Of a stretch of 7,680 bases of DNA, positions 1-7,680 are shown piece by piece. Where the stretch lies: positions 1 through 7,680 of the forward strand of contig CDRNVI010000245.1 of assembly GCA_977017575.1 (NCBI GenBank), written 5' to 3'. A model generated the notes under the pieces. That model saw nothing but the letters and a program-made list of their open reading frames with translations, had not been told where the DNA came from and did not search any database. A program made the translations under genes and the position numbers. This DNA comes from Paramoeba atlantica (lineage: Eukaryota > Protista > Discosea). Each line of letters begins with the position of its first letter. The first letter of the stretch is position 1.

Positions 1-96
1 CTGTTAATTTTCCATCAACATCATAATTTTTATTTAAAAATTTTAATCAAAATCAATTTTATAAACATTTTTTGTAAAAAAATTAAAATTTTTACT

Positions 97-166
97 GGAA
101 AATTACGGTGAGATGCATAAAAATTAGATTTAAACATAAATTTATGCAAACTACCGTTTAATTTCC
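97..166. other. Imperfect hairpin (also at 4706-4775)
   Basis: tgcataaa 114-121 / tttatgca 141-148; acggt 105-109 / accgt 153-157; looser ggaaaatta / taatttcc at the base. Confidence 0.6.
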
Positions 167-512
167 AACAAAATTTAAATTTTTTTCATTCAAAAATAGA
201 TTTTTTTAATTTTTCGCCGACAAAATTGAAAAAAAATTGAATTTTCATTCAAAAAGTTGTAAAATTGAGTCTCAGGATGAAAAAGTGGAAAAAGACCACA
301 TTTTATCAATTCGACGCTAAATTAGCAAAAAATTTCAATTTCTACACCTAAATGACTGTAGAAATTGGTGTTTTCCTACAATTTTGTGGAAACTCCTGAC
401 AAACACTGCTAAATTTCCAACAAAAAGTCAATTTGCAGGTGCTGCCCGTGGATTTTCCAACAAAATACTAGCAAAACTACTCAAAATGCTATTTTTCCGG
501 CAGAAAACCGTC

Positions 513-656
513 AAAATCTGCTTTTTCTGGGCAGGAATGACAAAAACGGCCCAAAAAAGGCCCTGTCATTTTGCCCAAAAACGCAGTATTTTTTCCTGTT
601 CTGGCCTGCAAATTAGCGGATGTCCAAGTGCCCCAAAAAAAGTGACTTGGACTCCG
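513..656 (+). other. Two GC-richer hairpins with C-A(n) loops (also at 5122-5265)
   Basis: 513-592: aaaat-ctgc/gcag-t-atttt, tgggcag/ttgccca (one G-U), aatgaca/tgtcatt, ggcc-CAAAAAA-ggcc. 617-656: cgga/tccg plus gtccaagt/acttggac. Confidence 0.65.
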
Positions 657-804
657 AGCCGACTCGAAAAGTCGTATTTTCCGGCAGAAACGAAAAAATA
701 TGCCACATTTTGTCCGACGATTATTTACAACTTTTTCTCGCATCCCATCATAGCGATTTTGCGGATCTGCAAGTTGGGAGGGAACCAACTGCATTTTTTG
801 GCCG

Positions 805-957
805 TTTTGAACCCGTTTTGTAAAAAATCGCATATATAAACTCCATAATTTCCCCTCAGAAATCTGCCACTTTTGGACGCCAAAAAGTGTTTTGCAGAAT
901 CTCGAGGGCAAAATAGGAGTTTTTTGACCCGATTTTGTGAACAAAACTGGCATCAAA
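805..957 (+). other. ~150-nt rod-like hairpin (also at 5414-5566)
   Basis: Nested stems: ttttga/tcaaaa, gttttgt 815-821/acaaaac 940-946, aaaatcg/cgatttt, aaactcc 838-844/ggagttt 916-922, ccctc/gaggg, tctgc/gcaga, cacttttgg 868-876/ccaaaaagtg 880-889. The loop is ACG in copy A and AGA in copy B. Confidence 0.75.
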
Positions 958-1092
958 AACTATTCCAAATGCTCCAATCCGAATTTCAGCTATTGAACAC
1001 TAAAAATGCTGAAAATCGCTATTTCGCACTGGAATTCCGCCAAAACTCCTTTTCAATGCGTATTTTGGGCGAGAAAATCGTGAATTTTATAA

Positions 1093-1372
1093 TTTTTAAA
1101 CTTTTTTTTGTATAATTTATCATTTTTAGCGCGGATTTGTATAATTTCTCGCATAATTTATTAGTTTTATAGCGTTGTAGTTAAAATTTTCATAATTTTA
1201 TCATCAAAGTCATCATTTTTCTATAATTTCAAACAAAATTATTAAAAAAAATGTTGTCTCAGACGAAAAAATTGCATGAAAGTTGTTAAACAACACTAAA
1301 ACTAAAAAAATATCCCGCAGAAATTAAAAAACCGTGATAAAAATTTATAAATTCAAAAGAAAAATTTAAAAA
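1093..1372 (+). other. ~280-nt imperfect rod-like hairpin (also at 5702-5981)
   Basis: T-rich arm against A-rich arm in colinear nested order: tttttaaa/tttaaaaa, tttatca/tgataaa, gcggat/atcccgc, ttagtttt/aaaactaa, gttgt/acaac, tttcat/atgaaa, cattttt/aaaaatg, ataattt/aaattat around loop caaaca (1230-1235). Confidence 0.65.
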
Positions 1373-1392
1373 TCTTAAAAATTTATGATGAA

Positions 1393-1421
1393 ATCATCTT
1401 CTTTGTACCAAAATCAGATGT
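1393..1421 (-). repeat. Partial reverse copy (R') of the ~85-nt module (also 6002-6030)
   Basis: atcatcttctttgtaccaaaatcagatgt is identical to the core of the reverse module at 6431-6459. It is enclosed by tgatg 1386-1390 / catca 1425-1429. Confidence 0.85.
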
Positions 1422-1562
1422 AAACATCAAAAAATTTTTTTAAAATCACTAGTTGAAACCATCGTCTATGGTTTCTTTTGTTAATGATCAATGTTTTCAT
1501 TTCATTCATAACATTTTCACGTTAACTTCGTTCAACTAACTTGAATTTTATTAAAATTATGA

Positions 1563-1619
1563 TTCATAAAATAATTTTTTCATTGCTAAAAATAAAACCG
1601 CAATGGAAATTATTATGAA
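1563..1619 (+). other. Hairpin (also 6172-6228)
   Basis: ttttcattgc 1577-1586 / gcaatggaaa 1600-1609 (one U-G), extended by aataa/ttatt and ttcat/atgaa. The two inter-copy substitutions (1595, 1598) both lie in the loop. Confidence 0.7.
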
Positions 1620-1633
1620 ACAAGTTTTAATAA

Positions 1634-1659
1634 TTCAAACTTAAGTTTGAACTCGAGTT
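1634..1659. other. Overlapping perfect palindromes (18 bp + 10 bp), also 6243-6268
   Basis: ttcaaacttaagtttgaa 1634-1651 and aactcgagtt 1650-1659 are each their own reverse complement. Confidence 0.9.
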
Positions 1660-1806
1660 ATAAAATTTTAATAACATTAATATATACTTTTAAATAACTT
1701 CTATAATTAATTCAAAAGAGAATTTATAATTAAGAACTTATAAAACTATATTTAATGATTTAAAACTTAATAACTTGTTGTAATGTTTTCAATATAATAA
1801 TATATT

Positions 1807-1877
1807 TACGATATATTATCTTCTTTGTTCCAAAATCAGATGTTGATTATCGTACATTCTTATTACATGAAAACATA
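1807..1877 (-). repeat. Reverse-orientation copy (R) of the ~85-nt module
   Basis: 1831-1877 is the reverse complement of 2039-2085 (47 nt, 2 mismatches). 1833-1876 is the perfect reverse complement of 2395-2438 (44 nt). Confidence 0.95.
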
Positions 1878-2040
1878 ACAACATAAAGAATACAATAGGC
1901 ACTCCTTACATTTAAATGCCCTTAATATAATTTATCGATATATTTAATTACACAAATAATTTAAAATATAATTTATAAAATATTAATAAAGTTCATGTAA
2001 AATGTAAGAAGTTACCCTAGTTTTCCTGGTATTGTGAGTA

Positions 2041-2125
2041 TGTTTTCATGTAATAAACATGTACGATAATCAACATCTGATTTTGACTCAAAGCAGAGTA
2101 ATCATCGTTAAATATCGTTACAAAG
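2041..2125 (+). repeat. Forward module F1 (aaacatg variant)
   Basis: gttttcatgtaataaacatgtacgataatcaacatctgattttgactcaaagcagagtaatcatcgttaaatatcgttacaaag; near-identical copies at 2395, 6655 and 7021. Confidence 0.95.
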
Positions 2126-2394
2126 TTATTACAAATAAAACATAAATCACTAATAACAGGAAAATATTAAATACAAAAATATTTAATAAACTTCGATGCA
2201 AAAAAGCATCTTGACAATCTCTGTGTTTTTGTTAAAAAAAATAGCGTAAAACTACAAAACCATATATATAAAATGAAAAGTGTATAAAAAAGAAAAGCAT
2301 ACACTTTGATACATTCAATCGAAAAATATCTCAATCATGTATCATTAATTTTAGTATATATGGTAGGAGTTTTACCTTTACAGTGCTATTAGTC

Positions 2395-2480
2395 ATGTTT
2401 TCATGTAATAAGAATGTACGATAATCAACATCTGATTTGCACTCAAAGTAGAGTAATCATCGTTAAATATCAGTACAAAG
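2395..2480 (+). repeat. Forward module F2 (aagaatg variant)
   Basis: Direct repeat of 2041-2125, about 355 nt downstream. Confidence 0.95.
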
Positions 2481-2517
2481 TCATTACAAGAAAACTAAAG
2501 ATTAAAGCACTGTAAAA

Positions 2518-2552
2518 TTGCACTAAGATTTCCTTCAGAAATTCAAGTGCAA
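2518..2552 (+). other. TAAGATTT..AAATTCAA hairpin family, member H1
   Basis: ttgcact-aa-gatttc-cttca-gaaatt-ca-agtgcaa. Confidence 0.9.
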
Positions 2553-2629
2553 ATATCCGCCCAACTTATAAAATATAAGTGGCGTCTATATATATTTTTT
2601 TATCGAAAAAAACGATAAATAAATAAAGA

Positions 2630-2662
2630 TCATGATAAGATTTCTACGAAATTCAATCATGA
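2630..2662 (+). other. TAAGATTT..AAATTCAA hairpin family, member H2
   Basis: tcatgat-aa-gatttc-tac-gaaatt-ca-atcatga. Confidence 0.9.
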
Positions 2663-2663
2663 A

Positions 2664-2683
2664 GCATACACTATAGTGTATGC
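2664..2683. other. Perfect 20-bp palindrome (also 7322-7341)
   Basis: gcatacactatagtgtatgc equals its own reverse complement. Confidence 0.95.
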
Positions 2684-2827
2684 AAATTATTACAAAAATA
2701 ATAATTTTAAAATTTTTTCTTCGAAATTCAAAGAAGAATTTATTCGAAAAAAATATAAATTTTAATGTTTTCGTGTTTAACTACAACTTAAATTTATATA
2801 TATTTCGTTAAATTAAGAGAATAATTA

Positions 2828-3100
2828 AACGAAACTGTTACTCGGCAAAAATAAGGGAATTTTTGAGTAACAGACCGTTCAAATTGAAAACAAAAAAACA
2901 ATTTGCACGGCAATTCTTGGGGTTTTTACGCCTCACGGCTTCGTGATTGGACTAAAGAGCAGGAGCGAGAGCAAGAAAGTTTGCAGGGGTAGTTGAGTTA
3001 GCTATTCCCGGTGGAAGCTAACCTCGATTCTTTAGTCTTTAGTTGTGGTAATTTGGGATAGTGAAGTAAAATTTTTAAAGTTCACTATCGACAATTACTA
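2828..3100 (+). ncRNA. Putative structured RNA domain of unknown family (GC-richer, multi-hairpin); partial second copy 7486-7680
   Basis: ctgttactc 2835-2843/gagtaacag 2865-2873; tcacg-gctt-cgtga 2933-2946; ggactaaagag 2949-2959/ttctttagtct 3028-3038 enclosing gcaa/ttgc and gttagct 2997-3003/agctaac 3016-3022; gatagtgaa 3057-3065/ttcactatc 3081-3089. No family motif recognised; that it is an RNA is inference. Confidence 0.35.
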
Positions 3101-3640
3101 TTCTCTTTCATCTTTTGGCGTGCATTGCTAATTGATCCCAATAGACAATCACATTCAGAAATGATCGTTGCTATCCCTATATGTATGTAAAATATCATAC
3201 ATAAGAATCAATAAGATCTATTTCGTCTCCTCTTTCATCCTTTTAACATAGCAAGACTAATCTATATTATATAATTATTATTCAACTTTTTTAATTATAT
3301 TTTATCTGCTTGAACACCATAGTTCGATAAAAAATAAATAAAAAGATGAATAAATAACTAAAAAATAAAGATAGACAAGAACAAGAATAGTTTAGTTTAA
3401 TTCCGTGTTAAATCCTCAATCCTTAAGTCGGATTTGTCACTCCATATACGATCAAACTTTATTTACTTAAATTTTTACAAAGATAGTAAAATTAAAAGTA
3501 TAAAGATGATCTAGCTCACCAGTTTTATTTAAATTAAAATCTTACACAATGATTTTATATTTATAAACTACTCGCTTCCATCGACCCTCGACTTTGTTGA
3601 AGTTTAAGTTTTTGAGTTTACGATATTAAAGAGAAAAAAA

Positions 3641-3786
3641 ATATTATTGCGCTCTATTGGTGGGGCTTTCGTTAAATTATTAAAAGCTCAACGTCATTGT
3701 TCGCGTTTTACGTTACACTCCACAAGCTAAACAAGTGCGTTCTGCCTTAATAATCACTACCCCTCACCAAAAGGTCGCAATAATAT
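3641..3786 (+). other. 146-nt rod-like hairpin
   Basis: atattattgcg 3641-3651/cgcaataatat 3776-3786; ttggtgggg 3657-3665/cctcaccaa 3762-3770 (one G-U); attattaa 3676-3683/ttaataat 3747-3754; ttgtt 3697-3701/aacaa 3730-3734. Confidence 0.75.
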
Positions 3787-3790
3787 ATGT

Positions 3791-3894
3791 TTTTAGCGTT
3801 TAAGATCTGGAGACCATTTTCAAAATAGAAAATGTCAATCGCTTTTTTCTTACGCAAGTACGTCAAAAAAATCGTTTTTCTCCATGAGCTAAAA
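3791..3894 (+). other. Branched hairpin domain including a C-GCAA-G loop
   Basis: ttttagc/gctaaaa, tggaga 3808-3813/tctcca 3879-3884, cattttc 3815-3821/gaaaatg 3828-3834, tac-GCAA-gta 3851-3860. Confidence 0.55.
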
Positions 3895-4157
3895 CGAGTT
3901 AGTTCGATCGGGCTTTTTTTGATGCTTTTTTTGGATCGCAGCTTCAACAAAAAAAAATTTCCGCTGCTGTTTTCCAACAAAGAAAATTATAAAAAAATAA
4001 TTTTGTTGTTGTCAAATACGATCTTTTAAAATATAAAATTTTTTTTATCGTTATAAATTTTATTCCGACATAAATTTGTTGGAAAAGTAACAGTAAAAAG
4101 TTGTTAATGAAAAAAAAATAAATTCATTAACAACAACGTTGATGAAAAATAACAATC

Positions 4158-4625
4158 AACGCTGTTAAATTTCCAACAAAATAATGTCAGAAAAAAATTT
4201 CTGCCGAAATAATTTAGCTGATTAAATTTTTATCACGACAAAAATATTTTTTTGTTGATCAATTAAATCGTTATTAACAAAAAAGTTATAACGCTGTTAA
4301 TTTTCCAACATAAAAATTTTTTATCTCTCAAAAAATATTTTTTGATGTTCAAAGTTATCGTTTGATAACAAAAAAGTTATAACGCTGTAACTTTTCCAAC
4401 AAAAAAAATTTTTTTTCGTGTTAAAAATTATTTTTGATCAATAAAAATTATTTTCGATGTTCAAATTCATCGTTTGATAACAAAAAAGTTATAACGCTGT
4501 TAATTTTCCATCAAAAATTATTTTTTTTGCTTCAAAAATTTTTTTTAACATAAAAATTTATAATGATGATTACAAAATAAGTGTTGCAACTCAAAAAAGT
4601 TGTTTAACACTGTGAATTTTCCATC
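4158..4625 (+). repeat. Degenerate minisatellite, ~90-130-nt period, core aacgctgttaattttccaac
   Basis: Core at 4158, 4290, 4381, 4493 and 4606 (spacings 132, 91, 112, 113). tttgataacaaaaaagttataacgctgt occurs at 4361 and 4473. Outlying cores at 402/5011 and ~3962; a reversed core at ~4076-4093. Confidence 0.85.
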
Positions 4626-6420
4626 AACATCATAATTTTTATTTAAAAATTTTAATCAAAATCAATTTTATAAACATTTTTTGTAAAAAAATTAAAATTT
4701 TTACTGGAAAATTACGGTGAGATGCATAAAAATTAGATTTAAACATAAATTTATGCAAACTACCGTTTAATTTCCAACAAAATTTAAATTTTTTTCATTC
4801 AAAAATAGATTTTTTTAATTTTTCGCTGACAAAATTGAAAAAAAATTGAATTTTCATTCAAAAAGTTGTAAAATTGAGTCTCAGGATGAAAAAGTGGAAA
4901 AAGACCACATTTTATCAATTCGACGCTAAATTAGCAAAAAATTTCAATTTCTACACCTAAATGACTGTAGAAATTGGTGTTTTCCTACAATTTTGTGGAA
5001 ATCCCTGACAAACACTGCTAAATTTCCAACAAAAAGTCAATTTGCAGGTGCTGCCCGTGGATTTTCCAACAAAATACTAGCAAAACTACTCAAAATGCTA
5101 TTTTTCCGGCAGAAAACCGTCAAAATCTGCTTTTTCTGGGCAGGAATGACAAAAACGGCCCAAAAAAGGCCCTGTCATTTTGCCCAAAAACGCAGTATTT
5201 TTTCCTGTTCTGGCCTGCAAATTAGCGGATGTCCAAGTGCCCCAAAAAAAGTGACTTGCACTCCGAGCCGACTCGAAAAGTCGTATTTTCCGGCAGAAAC
5301 GAAAAAATATGCCACATTTTGTCCGACGATTATTTACAACTTTTTCTCGCATCCCATCATAGCGATTTTGCGGATCTGCAGGTTGGGAGGGAGCCAACTG
5401 CATTTTTTGGCCGTTTTGAACCCGTTTTGTAAAAAATCGCATATATAAACTCCTTAATTTCCCCTCAGAAATCTGCCACTTTTGGAGACCAAAAAGTGTT
5501 TTGCAGAATCTAAAGTGGAAAATAGGAGTTTTTTGACCCGATTTTGTGAACAAAACTGGCATCAAAAACTATTCCAAATGCTCCAATCCGAATTTCAGCT
5601 ATTGAACACTAAAAATGCTGAAAATCGCTATTTCGCACTGGAATTCCGCCAAAACTCCTTTTCAATGCGTATTTTGGGCGAGAAAACCGTCGATTTTATA
5701 ATTTTTAAACTTTTTTTTGTATAATTTATCATTTTTAGCGCGGATTTCTATAATTTCTCGCATAATTTATTAGTTTTATAGCGTTGTAGTTAAAATTTTC
5801 ATAATTTTATCATCAAAGTCATCATTTTTCTATAATTTCAAACAAAATTATTAAAAAAAATGTTGTCTCAGACGAAAAAATTGCATGAAAGTTGTTAAAC
5901 AACACTAAAACTAAAAAAATATCCCGCAGAAATTAAAAAACCGTGATAAAAATTTATAAATTCAAAAGAAAAATTTAAAAATCTTAAAAATTTATGATGA
6001 AATCATCTTCTTTGTACCAAAATCAGATGTAAACATCAAAAAATTTTTTTAAAATCACTAGTTGAAACCATCGTCTATGGTTTCTTTTGTTAATGATCAA
6101 TGTTTTCATTTCATTCATAACATTTTCACGTTAACTTCGTTCAACTAACTTGAATTTTATTAAAATTATGATTCATAAAATAATTTTTTCATTGCTAAAA
6201 ATAGAATCGCAATGGAAATTATTATGAAACAAGTTTTAATAATTCAAACTTAAGTTTGAACTCGAGTTATAAAATTTTATAAATTTAAATTATAATTTCA
6301 ATCATTTCTATAATTAATTCAATAGAGAATTTATAATTATGAAACTATGAAACTATATTTAATGATTTAAAATTTAATAATCCCTGTATGTGTTCTTTAT
6401 GTTTTCAATGTCTGATGATA

Positions 6421-6490
6421 TGTTCGATATATCATCTTCTTTGTACCAAAATCAGATGTTGATTATCGTACATTCTTATTACATGAAAAC
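6421..6490 (-). repeat. Reverse module R, copy B
   Basis: 6447-6490 is the perfect 44-nt reverse complement of 6655-6698. Confidence 0.95.
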
Positions 6491-6654
6491 AAAAAAGAAC
6501 ATACAACAGGGAAATACTAAGATACTTTAATAACTATTATGTATATAAATTGATCGAATATATAATTACAAAAATAATTTAAAATATTCAATAATATTAA
6601 ATATATATAGTTATTAAAGTGATCTTGTATCCTAGTTCATGTCGATTCTTTTAG

Positions 6655-6737
6655 GTTTTCATGTAATAAGAATGTACGATAATCAACATCTGATTTTGAC
6701 TCAAAGTAGAGTAATCATCGTTAAATATCAGTACAAA
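6655..6737 (+). repeat. Forward module, copy B first (aagaatg variant)
   Basis: Matches 2397-2479 apart from a few bases, and shares the aagaatg and tatcagtaca diagnostic bases. Confidence 0.95.
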
Positions 6738-6779
6738 ACTTATTACAAAGAAAACAACTAATAAAGCATCGACATGAAA

Positions 6780-6849
6780 TTCTGCTAAGATTTCTACGAA
6801 ATTCAAGCAGAAAATTACACTAAGATTTCCTATAGAAATTCAAGTGTAA
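6780..6849 (+). other. Tandem pair of TAAGATTT..AAATTCAA hairpins (H3 6780-6812, H4 6815-6849)
   Basis: ttctgct-aa-gatttc-tac-gaaatt-ca-agcagaa; ttacact-aa-gatttc-ctata-gaaatt-ca-agtgtaa. Confidence 0.9.
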
Positions 6850-7020
6850 ACAAACATTAGTATTGCAAAAACAATCTATGTTTGTATTAAAAAAAACACA
6901 TCTAGAACAATATAATATAAATCAATAAAAATATTTAATTACAAAAATAATATAAAATATAATTTATAAATTTATTATTAAAATGATCTAGATGAACATA
7001 TTCCTGGGTATTCTAATGTG

Positions 7021-7103
7021 GTTTTCATGTAATAAACATGTACGATAATCAACATCTGATTTTGACTCAAAGTAGAGTAATCATCGTTAAATATCGTATA
7101 AAG
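7021..7103 (+). repeat. Forward module, copy B second (aaacatg variant)
   Basis: Matches 2042-2125 apart from a few bases, and shares the aaacatg and tatcgt diagnostic bases. Confidence 0.95.
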
Positions 7104-7142
7104 TTTATTAATAATAAAACCACAAAGGAATCCAAGGAATAA

Positions 7143-7212
7143 TTATGCTAAGATTTATACTAAATTCAAGCATAAGATTGCACTAAGATTTCCTTCAGAA
7201 ATTCAAGTGCAA
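7143..7212 (+). other. Tandem pair of TAAGATTT..AAATTCAA hairpins (H5 7143-7175, H6 7178-7212)
   Basis: ttatgct-aa-gattta-tac-taaatt-ca-agcataa; ttgcact-aa-gatttc-cttca-gaaatt-ca-agtgcaa. Confidence 0.9.
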
Positions 7213-7285
7213 ATATCCGCTCAACTTATAAAATATAAGTGGCGTCTATATATTTAATCATTACAAAAATAATGAATTAAATAGA

Positions 7286-7320
7286 TCATGATAAGATTTT
7301 TTACAAAAATTCAATCATGA
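7286..7320 (+). other. TAAGATTT..AAATTCAA hairpin H7
   Basis: tcatgat-aa-gattttt-tac-aaaaatt-ca-atcatga; positional homologue of H2 with a different but still paired inner stem. Confidence 0.9.
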
Positions 7321-7680
7321 AGCATACACTATAGTGTATGCAAATTATTACAAAAATAATAATTTTAAAATTTTTTCTTCGAAATTCAAAGAAGAATTTA
7401 TTCGAAAAAAATATAAATTTTAATGTTTACGTGTTTAACTACAACTTAAATTTATATATATTTCGTTAAATTAAGAGAATAATTAAACGAAACTGTTACT
7501 CGGCAAAAATAAGGGAATTTTTGAGTAACAGACCGTTCAAATTGAAAACAAAAAAACAATTTGCACGGCAATTCTTGGGGTTTTTACGCCTCACGGCTTC
7601 GTGATTGGACTAAAGAGCAGGAGCGAGAGCAAGAAAGTTTGCAGGGGTAGTTGAGTTAGCTATTCCCGGTGGTAGCTAAC

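Follow-up and report, generated by a model that had tools for sequence, protein, structure and literature searches.

The locus raises the question of what kind of element would give three hairpins of about 160 nt that carry the same apical cap and each end at the same downstream module, here called F. An earlier note on this DNA read them as a family of miRNA-like precursors or guide cassettes, assembled from a constant cap, a variable duplex and a constant base. Examination of the window, meaning the whole stretch of 7,680 nucleotides that was analysed, leads us to favour, tentatively, another reading that we find plausible, namely a non-coding, palindrome-rich repeat of satellite type whose hairpins would be generated and maintained at the DNA level through inverted duplication.

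The setting of the hairpins is a tandem array. The window holds about 1.66 copies of an AT-rich 4.6-kb repeat arranged head to tail, with the following layout.

1-4609, + strand: unit A, the full tandem unit; unit B begins at 4610 and runs off the end of the window.
1680-2650, no strand assigned: variable segment of unit A; its counterpart in unit B is at 6290-7300 (about 1 kb).

Direct repeats link the two units at 1-300 and 4610-4909 (99% identity) and at 2649-2948 and 7307-7606 (100%), and blastn aligns 4610-6756 with 1-2142 and 7173-7680 with 2513-3022. In a 60-column profile of the alignment, units A and B are 98-100% identical in the backbone and 40-83% identical in 1680-2650, and all three hairpins lie inside this sharply bounded variable segment. 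The GC content ranges from 18 to 42% across the window, with A in excess of T and C in excess of G on the + strand throughout. Regarding coding capacity, the ORFs of the window gave no Pfam match and consist just of overlapping ORFs on both strands in the GC-richer part, and the tRNA scan of the window found none. Rfam, searched on both strands at E up to 1, returned no credible family and none at E below 0.06; three sub-threshold matches to Rfam miRNA models occur in the window, one of which merely traces the hairpin of the L module described below. Being head-to-tail, high-copy and non-coding, the 4.6-kb repeat is satellite DNA by the usual definition. Ordinary satellites are homogenised along their whole length. 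Furthermore, A/T tracts of at least four bases are phased at about 10 bp in 1-4609 (power 0.208, against 0.056±0.025 in shuffles), which is a signature of intrinsically curved DNA and is common to kinetoplast minicircles and many satellites. On either strand, many portions of the unit fold locally well beyond their shuffles (z reaches -9.8 at 4081-4200), so that the capacity to form hairpins extends over the unit as a whole and is not confined to the hairpin loci.

The motifs by which the hairpins had been described are all correct as placed when checked against the sequence, and the hairpins themselves can be delimited as follows.

About 1878-2038, + strand: hairpin 1, the inner variable part of a foldback at 1798-2122.
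6491-6654, + strand: hairpin 2, the inner part of a foldback at about 6425-6731.
6899-6994, + strand: core of hairpin 3, 96 nt, with a separate hairpin at 6850-6885.

Hairpin 1 is held by the pair cttacattt (1905-1913) and aaatgtaag (2000-2008), hairpin 2 by a perfect 13-bp pair, ctttaataactat (6525-6537) with atagttattaaag (6607-6619), and hairpin 3 by catctaga (6899-6906) and tctagatg (6987-6994). Fold z-scores, all calculated against dinucleotide shuffles, are -2.1 on the + strand (7 of 200 shuffles were as good) and -5.2 on the - strand for hairpin 1 (1878-2038), and -5.4 and -6.2, respectively, for hairpin 2 (6491-6654). The stretch 6850-7020 gives -3.6 on + and -4.2 on -, and the core of hairpin 3 alone (6899-6994) gives -4.5 and -4.8. 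The three hairpins of the earlier note are real, but hairpins 1 and 2 turn out to be the tips of foldbacks of about 310 nt. A single 170-nt hairpin 3 is not what the sequence folds into: the minimum-energy structure comprises the 96-nt hairpin and the separate one at 6850-6885, and the outer pairs acattag/ctaatgt of 6850-7020 are left unused in it.

The foldbacks are built from F and from a second module, L, whose copies are listed here together with the stretches that accompany them.

1393-1421, + strand: 29-nt partial copy of the outer end of L; a second copy is at 6002-6030 (direct repeat family D8).
1783-1878, + strand: L module of unit A, which ends in TTATTACATGAAAAC and is the 5' arm of foldback 1.
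2039-2141, + strand: F1, a self-folding hairpin (z -3.7 on +, -5.9 on -) and the 3' arm of foldback 1.
2142-2395, + strand: multi-hairpin stretch specific to unit A, before F2 (dG -51.5, z -5.4).
2396-2498, + strand: F2, solo, with no adjacent L.
6399-6494, + strand: L module of unit B, an inverted partial F.
6654-6756, + strand: F3, adjoining hairpin 2.
7021-7123, + strand: F4, solo, with no L partner.

Each of the three hairpins does run directly into F, gttttcatgtaataa being found immediately after it, at 2042, 6656 and 7021. The proposal that F forms the constant base of a precursor did not survive, since F is an independent hairpin of about 100 nt and at the same time one arm of an inverted repeat of 57-75 nt. 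Indeed, it folds by itself in 4/4 copies (z -3.7 to -5.0 on the + strand and -5.1 to -7.6 on the - strand), its terminal inverted repeats, with the ends GTTTTCATGTAATAA ... TTATTACAAAGAAAAC, pair together, and its core of about 85 nt is 91-95% identical among the four copies. The RNAalifold covariation term for F is positive, i.e. unfavourable, with four to six sequences being too few for a covariation test. The other arm of the inverted repeat is L, an inverted partial copy of F located at the 5' base of hairpins 1 and 2 (57-75 nt, 83-91% complementary), and alignment with reverse-complemented F copies resolves it as a partial F fused to other sequence. In unit A, about 1805-1877 of L is 84% complementary to 2039-2111 of F (inverted repeat I3); in unit B, 6435-6499 is 91% complementary to 6646-6710 (I4). 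The resulting foldbacks are very stable, with a dG of -101.5 kcal/mol and a z of -13.6 at 1798-2122 and a dG of -115.6 kcal/mol and a z of -16.1 at about 6425-6731, and they contain 124-126 Watson-Crick pairs. The fourth copy of F (2396-2498) follows a different multi-hairpin stretch without cap; this stretch, 2142-2395, is devoid of the 45-nt block described next and has no similarity to unit B.

At the other end of the hairpins, the caps ATTA-CACAAA/CAAAAA-TAAT at 1947-1960, 6565-6578 and 6938-6951 are embedded in a larger conserved block.

1925-1969, + strand: apical conserved 45-nt block of hairpin 1, with the cap inside; copies are at 6543-6587 and 6916-6960.

Pairwise identity of this block among the three hairpins is 80-89%. 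The shared cap reported earlier is present in all three, but it is not special to them: ATTACAAAAATAAT, searched with at most one mismatch, has six occurrences, all of them on the + strand, where 0.15 would be expected by chance, and the extra sites are small hairpins at 2689, 7260 and 7347.

Comparison of the hairpins with one another is informative as to their origin. To call their mid-stems unrelated, as had been done, is too strong, given that the whole hairpins are 61-66% identical versus 53±2% for shuffles. This similarity is unevenly distributed between the arms, the 3' arms of the three hairpins being 59-65% identical (z 2.6-4.8) and the 5' arms 44-56%, which is the chance level, and the 5' arm of each hairpin pairs with its own 3' arm. 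That the 5' arms are unrelated to each other and yet each pairs with its own 3' arm is the footprint expected of arm-to-arm inverted copying. Furthermore, blastn matches F4 and the adjoining 3' half of hairpin 3 (6931-7120) at 83% to F1 and the 3' half of hairpin 1 (1940-2141), so that one block is a copy of the other. By these sequence comparisons, the three hairpins are best described as diverged copies of one palindromic module.

Sequencing runs provide an independent view of the repeat. Run X3 is a GATC-ligation library (Hi-C type, proximity ligation), every listed joint being GATC to GATC, and its joints listed over 1380-7300 all fall within the repeat family (e.g. 1489 to 1818, 3508, 4257 and 4436). 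In X3 the word depth of allele-specific contigs is 10,000-16,000, and that of the conserved parts adds up to several hundred thousand; most of the unit is also present, at 99% identity or more, in runs labelled as two other organisms. Exact contigs cover hairpin 1 in X3 (1915-2009) and X6 (1846-2071), the region of hairpin 2 in X3 (6468-6554 and 6586-6683), and the region of hairpin 3 in X3 (6759-7049), X5 (6708-6995, across the tip) and X6 (6720-6921, the 5' part). An assembly artefact as the source of the hairpins was ruled out, as exact and independent short-read contigs span the tips. The stretch from F1 to F2 is unchanged in X5, with one difference in 384 nt. Divergent cassettes recur unchanged in separate runs and so represent stable alleles rather than noise or a fast-mutating patch, in a comparison that is biased by its restriction to near-identical contigs placed on the window. 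The sole RNA-labelled run, X15 (16.5 Mb of contigs), yielded zero contigs on the repeat, which is a weak test and not a proof of absence. The F core and a backbone 25-mer had no match in scans of public metagenomes and prokaryote genomes.

The variable segment also contains a class of much shorter hairpins, designated D.

2518-2662, + strand: run of short hairpins including D (fold z -6.6).

D hairpins, of 31-35 nt, combine exchanged basal stems with a core, TAAGATTT...AAATTCAA, that is constant and contains an AA/CA internal loop. They are located at 2518-2552, 2630-2662, 6780-6849, 7143-7212 and 7286-7320, and a search with the D motif gave 4 matches versus 0.25 expected. The basal stems (GCAC/GTGC, TGC/GCA, TGA/TCA, ACAC/GTGT and CATGA/TCATG) are fully exchanged and always paired, and on the + strand the hairpins retain a G·T wobble. 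For F and the long hairpins, folding is better and G·U pairs are more numerous on the - strand, and in arm-to-arm alignments of the foldbacks A:C mismatches number 16-20 versus 4-5 for G:T, A:A mismatches also exceeding T:T. Because the excess of A over T and of C over G is window-wide and the D hairpins favour the + strand, this A:C/G:T asymmetry can be compositional. The G·U asymmetry was also considered as proof of a minus-strand RNA and rejected, given the window-wide skew and the preference of the D hairpins for the other strand. No single strand is favoured for RNA.

The DNA-level origin of the hairpins is what we infer from their anatomy and from the relatedness of their copies, neither of which requires a small-RNA product. 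In the palindrome-rich satellite that we favour, F would have been copied in reverse to yield L and hence the foldbacks of about 310 nt, and inverted duplication with template switching at the DNA level would produce and renew the hairpin character. The 5' arm of each inner hairpin would be copied from its own 3' arm and for this reason differ from the 5' arms of the sister copies, and the block made of a 3' arm plus F would have been duplicated within the unit. Common descent would account for the shared cap and base, together with constraint or homogenisation acting on the apical block and on the core of F; this core may serve the repeat as a cis element recognised by a protein. As to its compartment, the repeat would belong either to a nuclear satellite or to the giant AT-rich mitochondrial DNA of a Perkinsela-like kinetoplastid. 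Mönttinen and Löytynoja reportedly described, in PNAS in 2022, hairpins created by template-switch mutations during replication. As here, one arm of a template-switch hairpin looks like an inverted copy of its partner, and 'compensated' stems appear without selection on RNA; such events usually involve tens of bases, whereas the arms here measure 70-150 nt and are nested. Palindrome-rich satellites share with this repeat a high-copy tandem array and curved AT-rich DNA. Several observations sit uneasily with the satellite reading, which accounts poorly for the fixed D loop and for a stable set of different cassettes where the backbone is homogenised. A stable library of differing cassettes in a constant backbone is unlike an ordinary satellite and suggests an information content of the cassettes. 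Conservation is far higher in the F core (91-95%) and the apical block (80-89%) than in the arms between them, which points to a sequence-specific constraint. The fixed asymmetric internal loop of D, with its exchanged and always-paired stems, is not a product of simple palindrome formation, and the location of all six cap motifs on one strand counts against a satellite acting as DNA only.

Among the readings that call for an RNA, the family of miRNA-like precursors is contradicted by the distribution of conservation. Paralogous miRNA precursors keep their mature arm while the loop is free to diverge, whereas in these hairpins the 45-nt apical block is 80-89% identical and arm identity is close to, or no better than, chance. 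A quite unlikely possibility is that the long foldbacks produce siRNAs, in which case an L-hairpin-F RNA of about 310 nt and about 125 bp would be made from a nuclear satellite and a Dicer-type enzyme would cut it into siRNAs acting on the F-bearing repeats, through silencing or heterochromatin. The 124-126 Watson-Crick pairs of the foldbacks (z -13.6 and -16.1) do form a long, near-perfect duplex of more than 100 bp, this duplex holds an inverted copy of F, a module that is also present in further sense copies, and the repeat has a high copy number, as is usual for satellites targeted by siRNAs. Hairpin-RNA loci, such as the hpRNAs of Drosophila and the inverted repeats of plants, usually originate from an inverted copy of a module that is repeated in sense. 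Drosophila hpRNA loci and the inverted-repeat or proto-miRNA loci of plants resemble the present case in having a foldback of several hundred nucleotides derived from inverted duplication, sense copies elsewhere and a long and nearly perfect duplex. They differ in that hairpin 3, as well as F2 and F4, is without an L partner here, so that two of the three hairpins fit, and in that the highest conservation resides in the loop block and the F core (hence in the loop and the base) and not in any arm. In addition, hpRNA-type loci are transcribed and processed into siRNAs, and the RNA-labelled contigs of X15 (16.5 Mb) show no transcript of the repeat, weak as this test is. The same lack of a contig from X15 and of a credible Rfam match weighs on a highly improbable structured multi-hairpin transcript of 'polycistronic' type, whose modules would be excised or bound singly, with the F core, the apical block and the D loop as signals for protein binding or processing of the RNA. 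The uninterrupted same-strand string of modules with A-rich loops, the D basal stems that are exchanged and always paired around a fixed internal loop, and the F hairpin with its z of -5.1 to -7.6 and its G·U pairs on the - strand would agree with such a transcript. The strand preferences of the modules conflict with each other, however, and the covariation term for F is unfavourable, on four to six sequences, too few for a test. Another explanation is a cluster of foldback or miniature inverted-repeat transposons, which we consider very unlikely. F would then be an element of about 103 bp with terminal inverted repeats of about 17 bp (GTTTTCWTGTAATAAG), inserted repeatedly, and once reversed to give L, into a permissive part of the satellite, and the long hairpins would be composite by-products. 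Four near-identical copies of F and two inverted partial copies within 7.7 kb, in surroundings that are far more diverged, argue for mobility, as do the terminal inverted repeats and self-folding of F; short non-coding modules with terminal inverted repeats in both orientations are shared by foldback/MITE elements and palindrome-rich satellites. By eye, however, no target-site duplication is visible at F1-F4, F invariably follows a hairpin immediately on its 3' side, in one and the same relative position, and L comprises only part of F, joined to other sequence. The lack of target-site duplications, the fixed positions of the modules and the sharply bounded variable segment in a homogenised unit set this repeat apart from foldback/MITE elements and palindrome-rich satellites alike.

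Kinetoplast gRNA-type cassettes offer a further explanation, unlikely in our judgement, in which the 4.6-kb unit would be part of the bulk kDNA of a Perkinsela-like kinetoplastid and its backbone would serve replication. L and F, which end in TTATTACATGAAAAC when read inward, would be a transcription or processing signal, the next 70-80-nt variable stretch would encode a gRNA on either strand, the apical block would be a shared 3' end, and the complementary arms would form a sense/antisense duplex delimiting 3' trimming. Such a duplex has been described for T. brucei minicircle cassettes, and T. brucei gRNA genes are flanked by 18-bp inverted repeats. Two of the cassettes here are flanked by inverted repeats as well, with the difference that the bracketing repeats measure 57-75 nt instead of 18 nt and that the variable region is itself palindromic, a gene body of this kind being unexpected for guides. 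The universal minicircle sequence GGGGTTGGTGTA, a minicircle feature found in trypanosomatids, is absent from the window (0 matches with at most 3 mismatches); it is not known to be required in early-branching kinetoplastids. A further difference is that kinetoplast minicircles are small circles, whereas the present repeat is a 4.6-kb head-to-tail tandem array. The gRNA-bearing DNA of T. brucei, A. spiralis and P. ankaliazontas is, like this repeat, high-copy and AT-rich with short variable cassettes in a constant backbone, and kinetoplast gRNA cassettes likewise have inverted repeats around a variable region of about 160 bp, phased A/T tracts (at about 10 bp here) and an A/C-rich start. The combination of a constant backbone and short variable cassettes (98-100% versus 40-83% identity) is indeed the layout of gRNA-bearing molecules in relatives, those of A. 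spiralis being about 600 bp with one variable region of about 85 bp and those of P. ankaliazontas being circles of 1.3-2.2 kb with 2-3 gRNAs (PMC7859406). The very high read depth and the GC content of 18-42% fit AT-rich kDNA, which makes this compartment a candidate: the kDNA of Perkinsela is AT-rich, has a size of about 120-250 Mb, makes up 92.8% of all DNA in the cell and is largely uncharacterised (PMC6334171), and its mitochondrial DNA has six protein genes, gRNA genes having not been robustly found (PMC4669381, PMC6334171). Identical alleles are stable across samples, and all six stretches that follow a module are A/C-rich (A+C 56-69%, T 20-33%), as candidate Perkinsela gRNAs have an 'A- or A/C-rich tract upstream' (PMC4669381); the T content is, however, high compared with the published candidates. 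Three of these candidates (cox1, atp6 and cox3) share up- and downstream flanks in File S3 of PMC4669381, a paper in which no common motif is reported among gRNA candidates, and the shared flanks may mark a real cassette family. The flanks of the better published Perkinsela candidates are absent from the window, and the modules of the window are absent from File S3 of PMC4669381. G:U-tolerant complements of six published edited-mRNA stretches gave 3 independent hits with 3 mismatches versus about 1.2 expected, which is near the chance level, in a test of low power that covered about one fifth of the edited regions and in which the strain may differ from the published one; edited-mRNA complementarity was thus not found in the few stretches tested. 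The weak test with the RNA-labelled run X15 yielded no contig here either. With regard to architecture, the guide cassettes of the earlier note hold in part: a conserved base, variable paired arms and a conserved tip are present in a variable segment, and the set may fairly be called a library of distinct hairpin cassettes, but no positive evidence of guides was obtained. The furthest-reaching version, to which we give quite a small probability, is that the 4.6-kb repeat would be a major part of the giant mitochondrial DNA of a Perkinsela-like organism and its hairpin cassettes the missing gRNA genes, arranged as convergent pairs between inverted modules of about 75 nt, with guide and antisense in cis on a read-through transcript.

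What the repeat is worth depends on which of these readings applies. As a palindrome-rich satellite and nothing more, it would be of modest value, providing a clean case of nested hairpins whose 'compensated' stems come from inverted copying and a warning that stems of this kind should not be taken for RNA covariation. Should it belong to the kDNA of a Perkinsela-like endosymbiont, the constant 4.6-kb backbone with its stable library of cassettes would be a concrete and directly testable candidate for gRNA genes, in an organelle that has six protein genes in about 120-250 Mb of AT-rich DNA and in which the rest of the DNA and the locations of the gRNAs are unexplained (PMC4669381, PMC6334171).

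Other structures were noticed in the backbone. Its GC-richer part at 2880-3110 (with a copy from 7540) contains the nested stems GACTAAAGA...TCTTTAGTC and GTTAGCT...AGCTAAC, which resemble a structured RNA and had no Rfam match at E up to 1. A GC-stemmed hairpin on the - strand, AATGACA..GGCC-CAAAAAA-GGCC..TGTCATT, is present at 512-592 and 5121-5201; it matches Rfam mir-2007 below threshold (26 bits versus a gathering score of 100), almost certainly by chance. Sub-repeats of 91 and 112 bp are found at 4139-4627 and also at 383-428 and 4992-5037, with about ten copies of the motif CTGTTAAWTTTCCAACAAAA, mostly on the + strand and with one inverted copy near 4075-4093, and the strongest local fold of the unit, at 4081-4200 (z -9.8), falls in this sub-repeat region.
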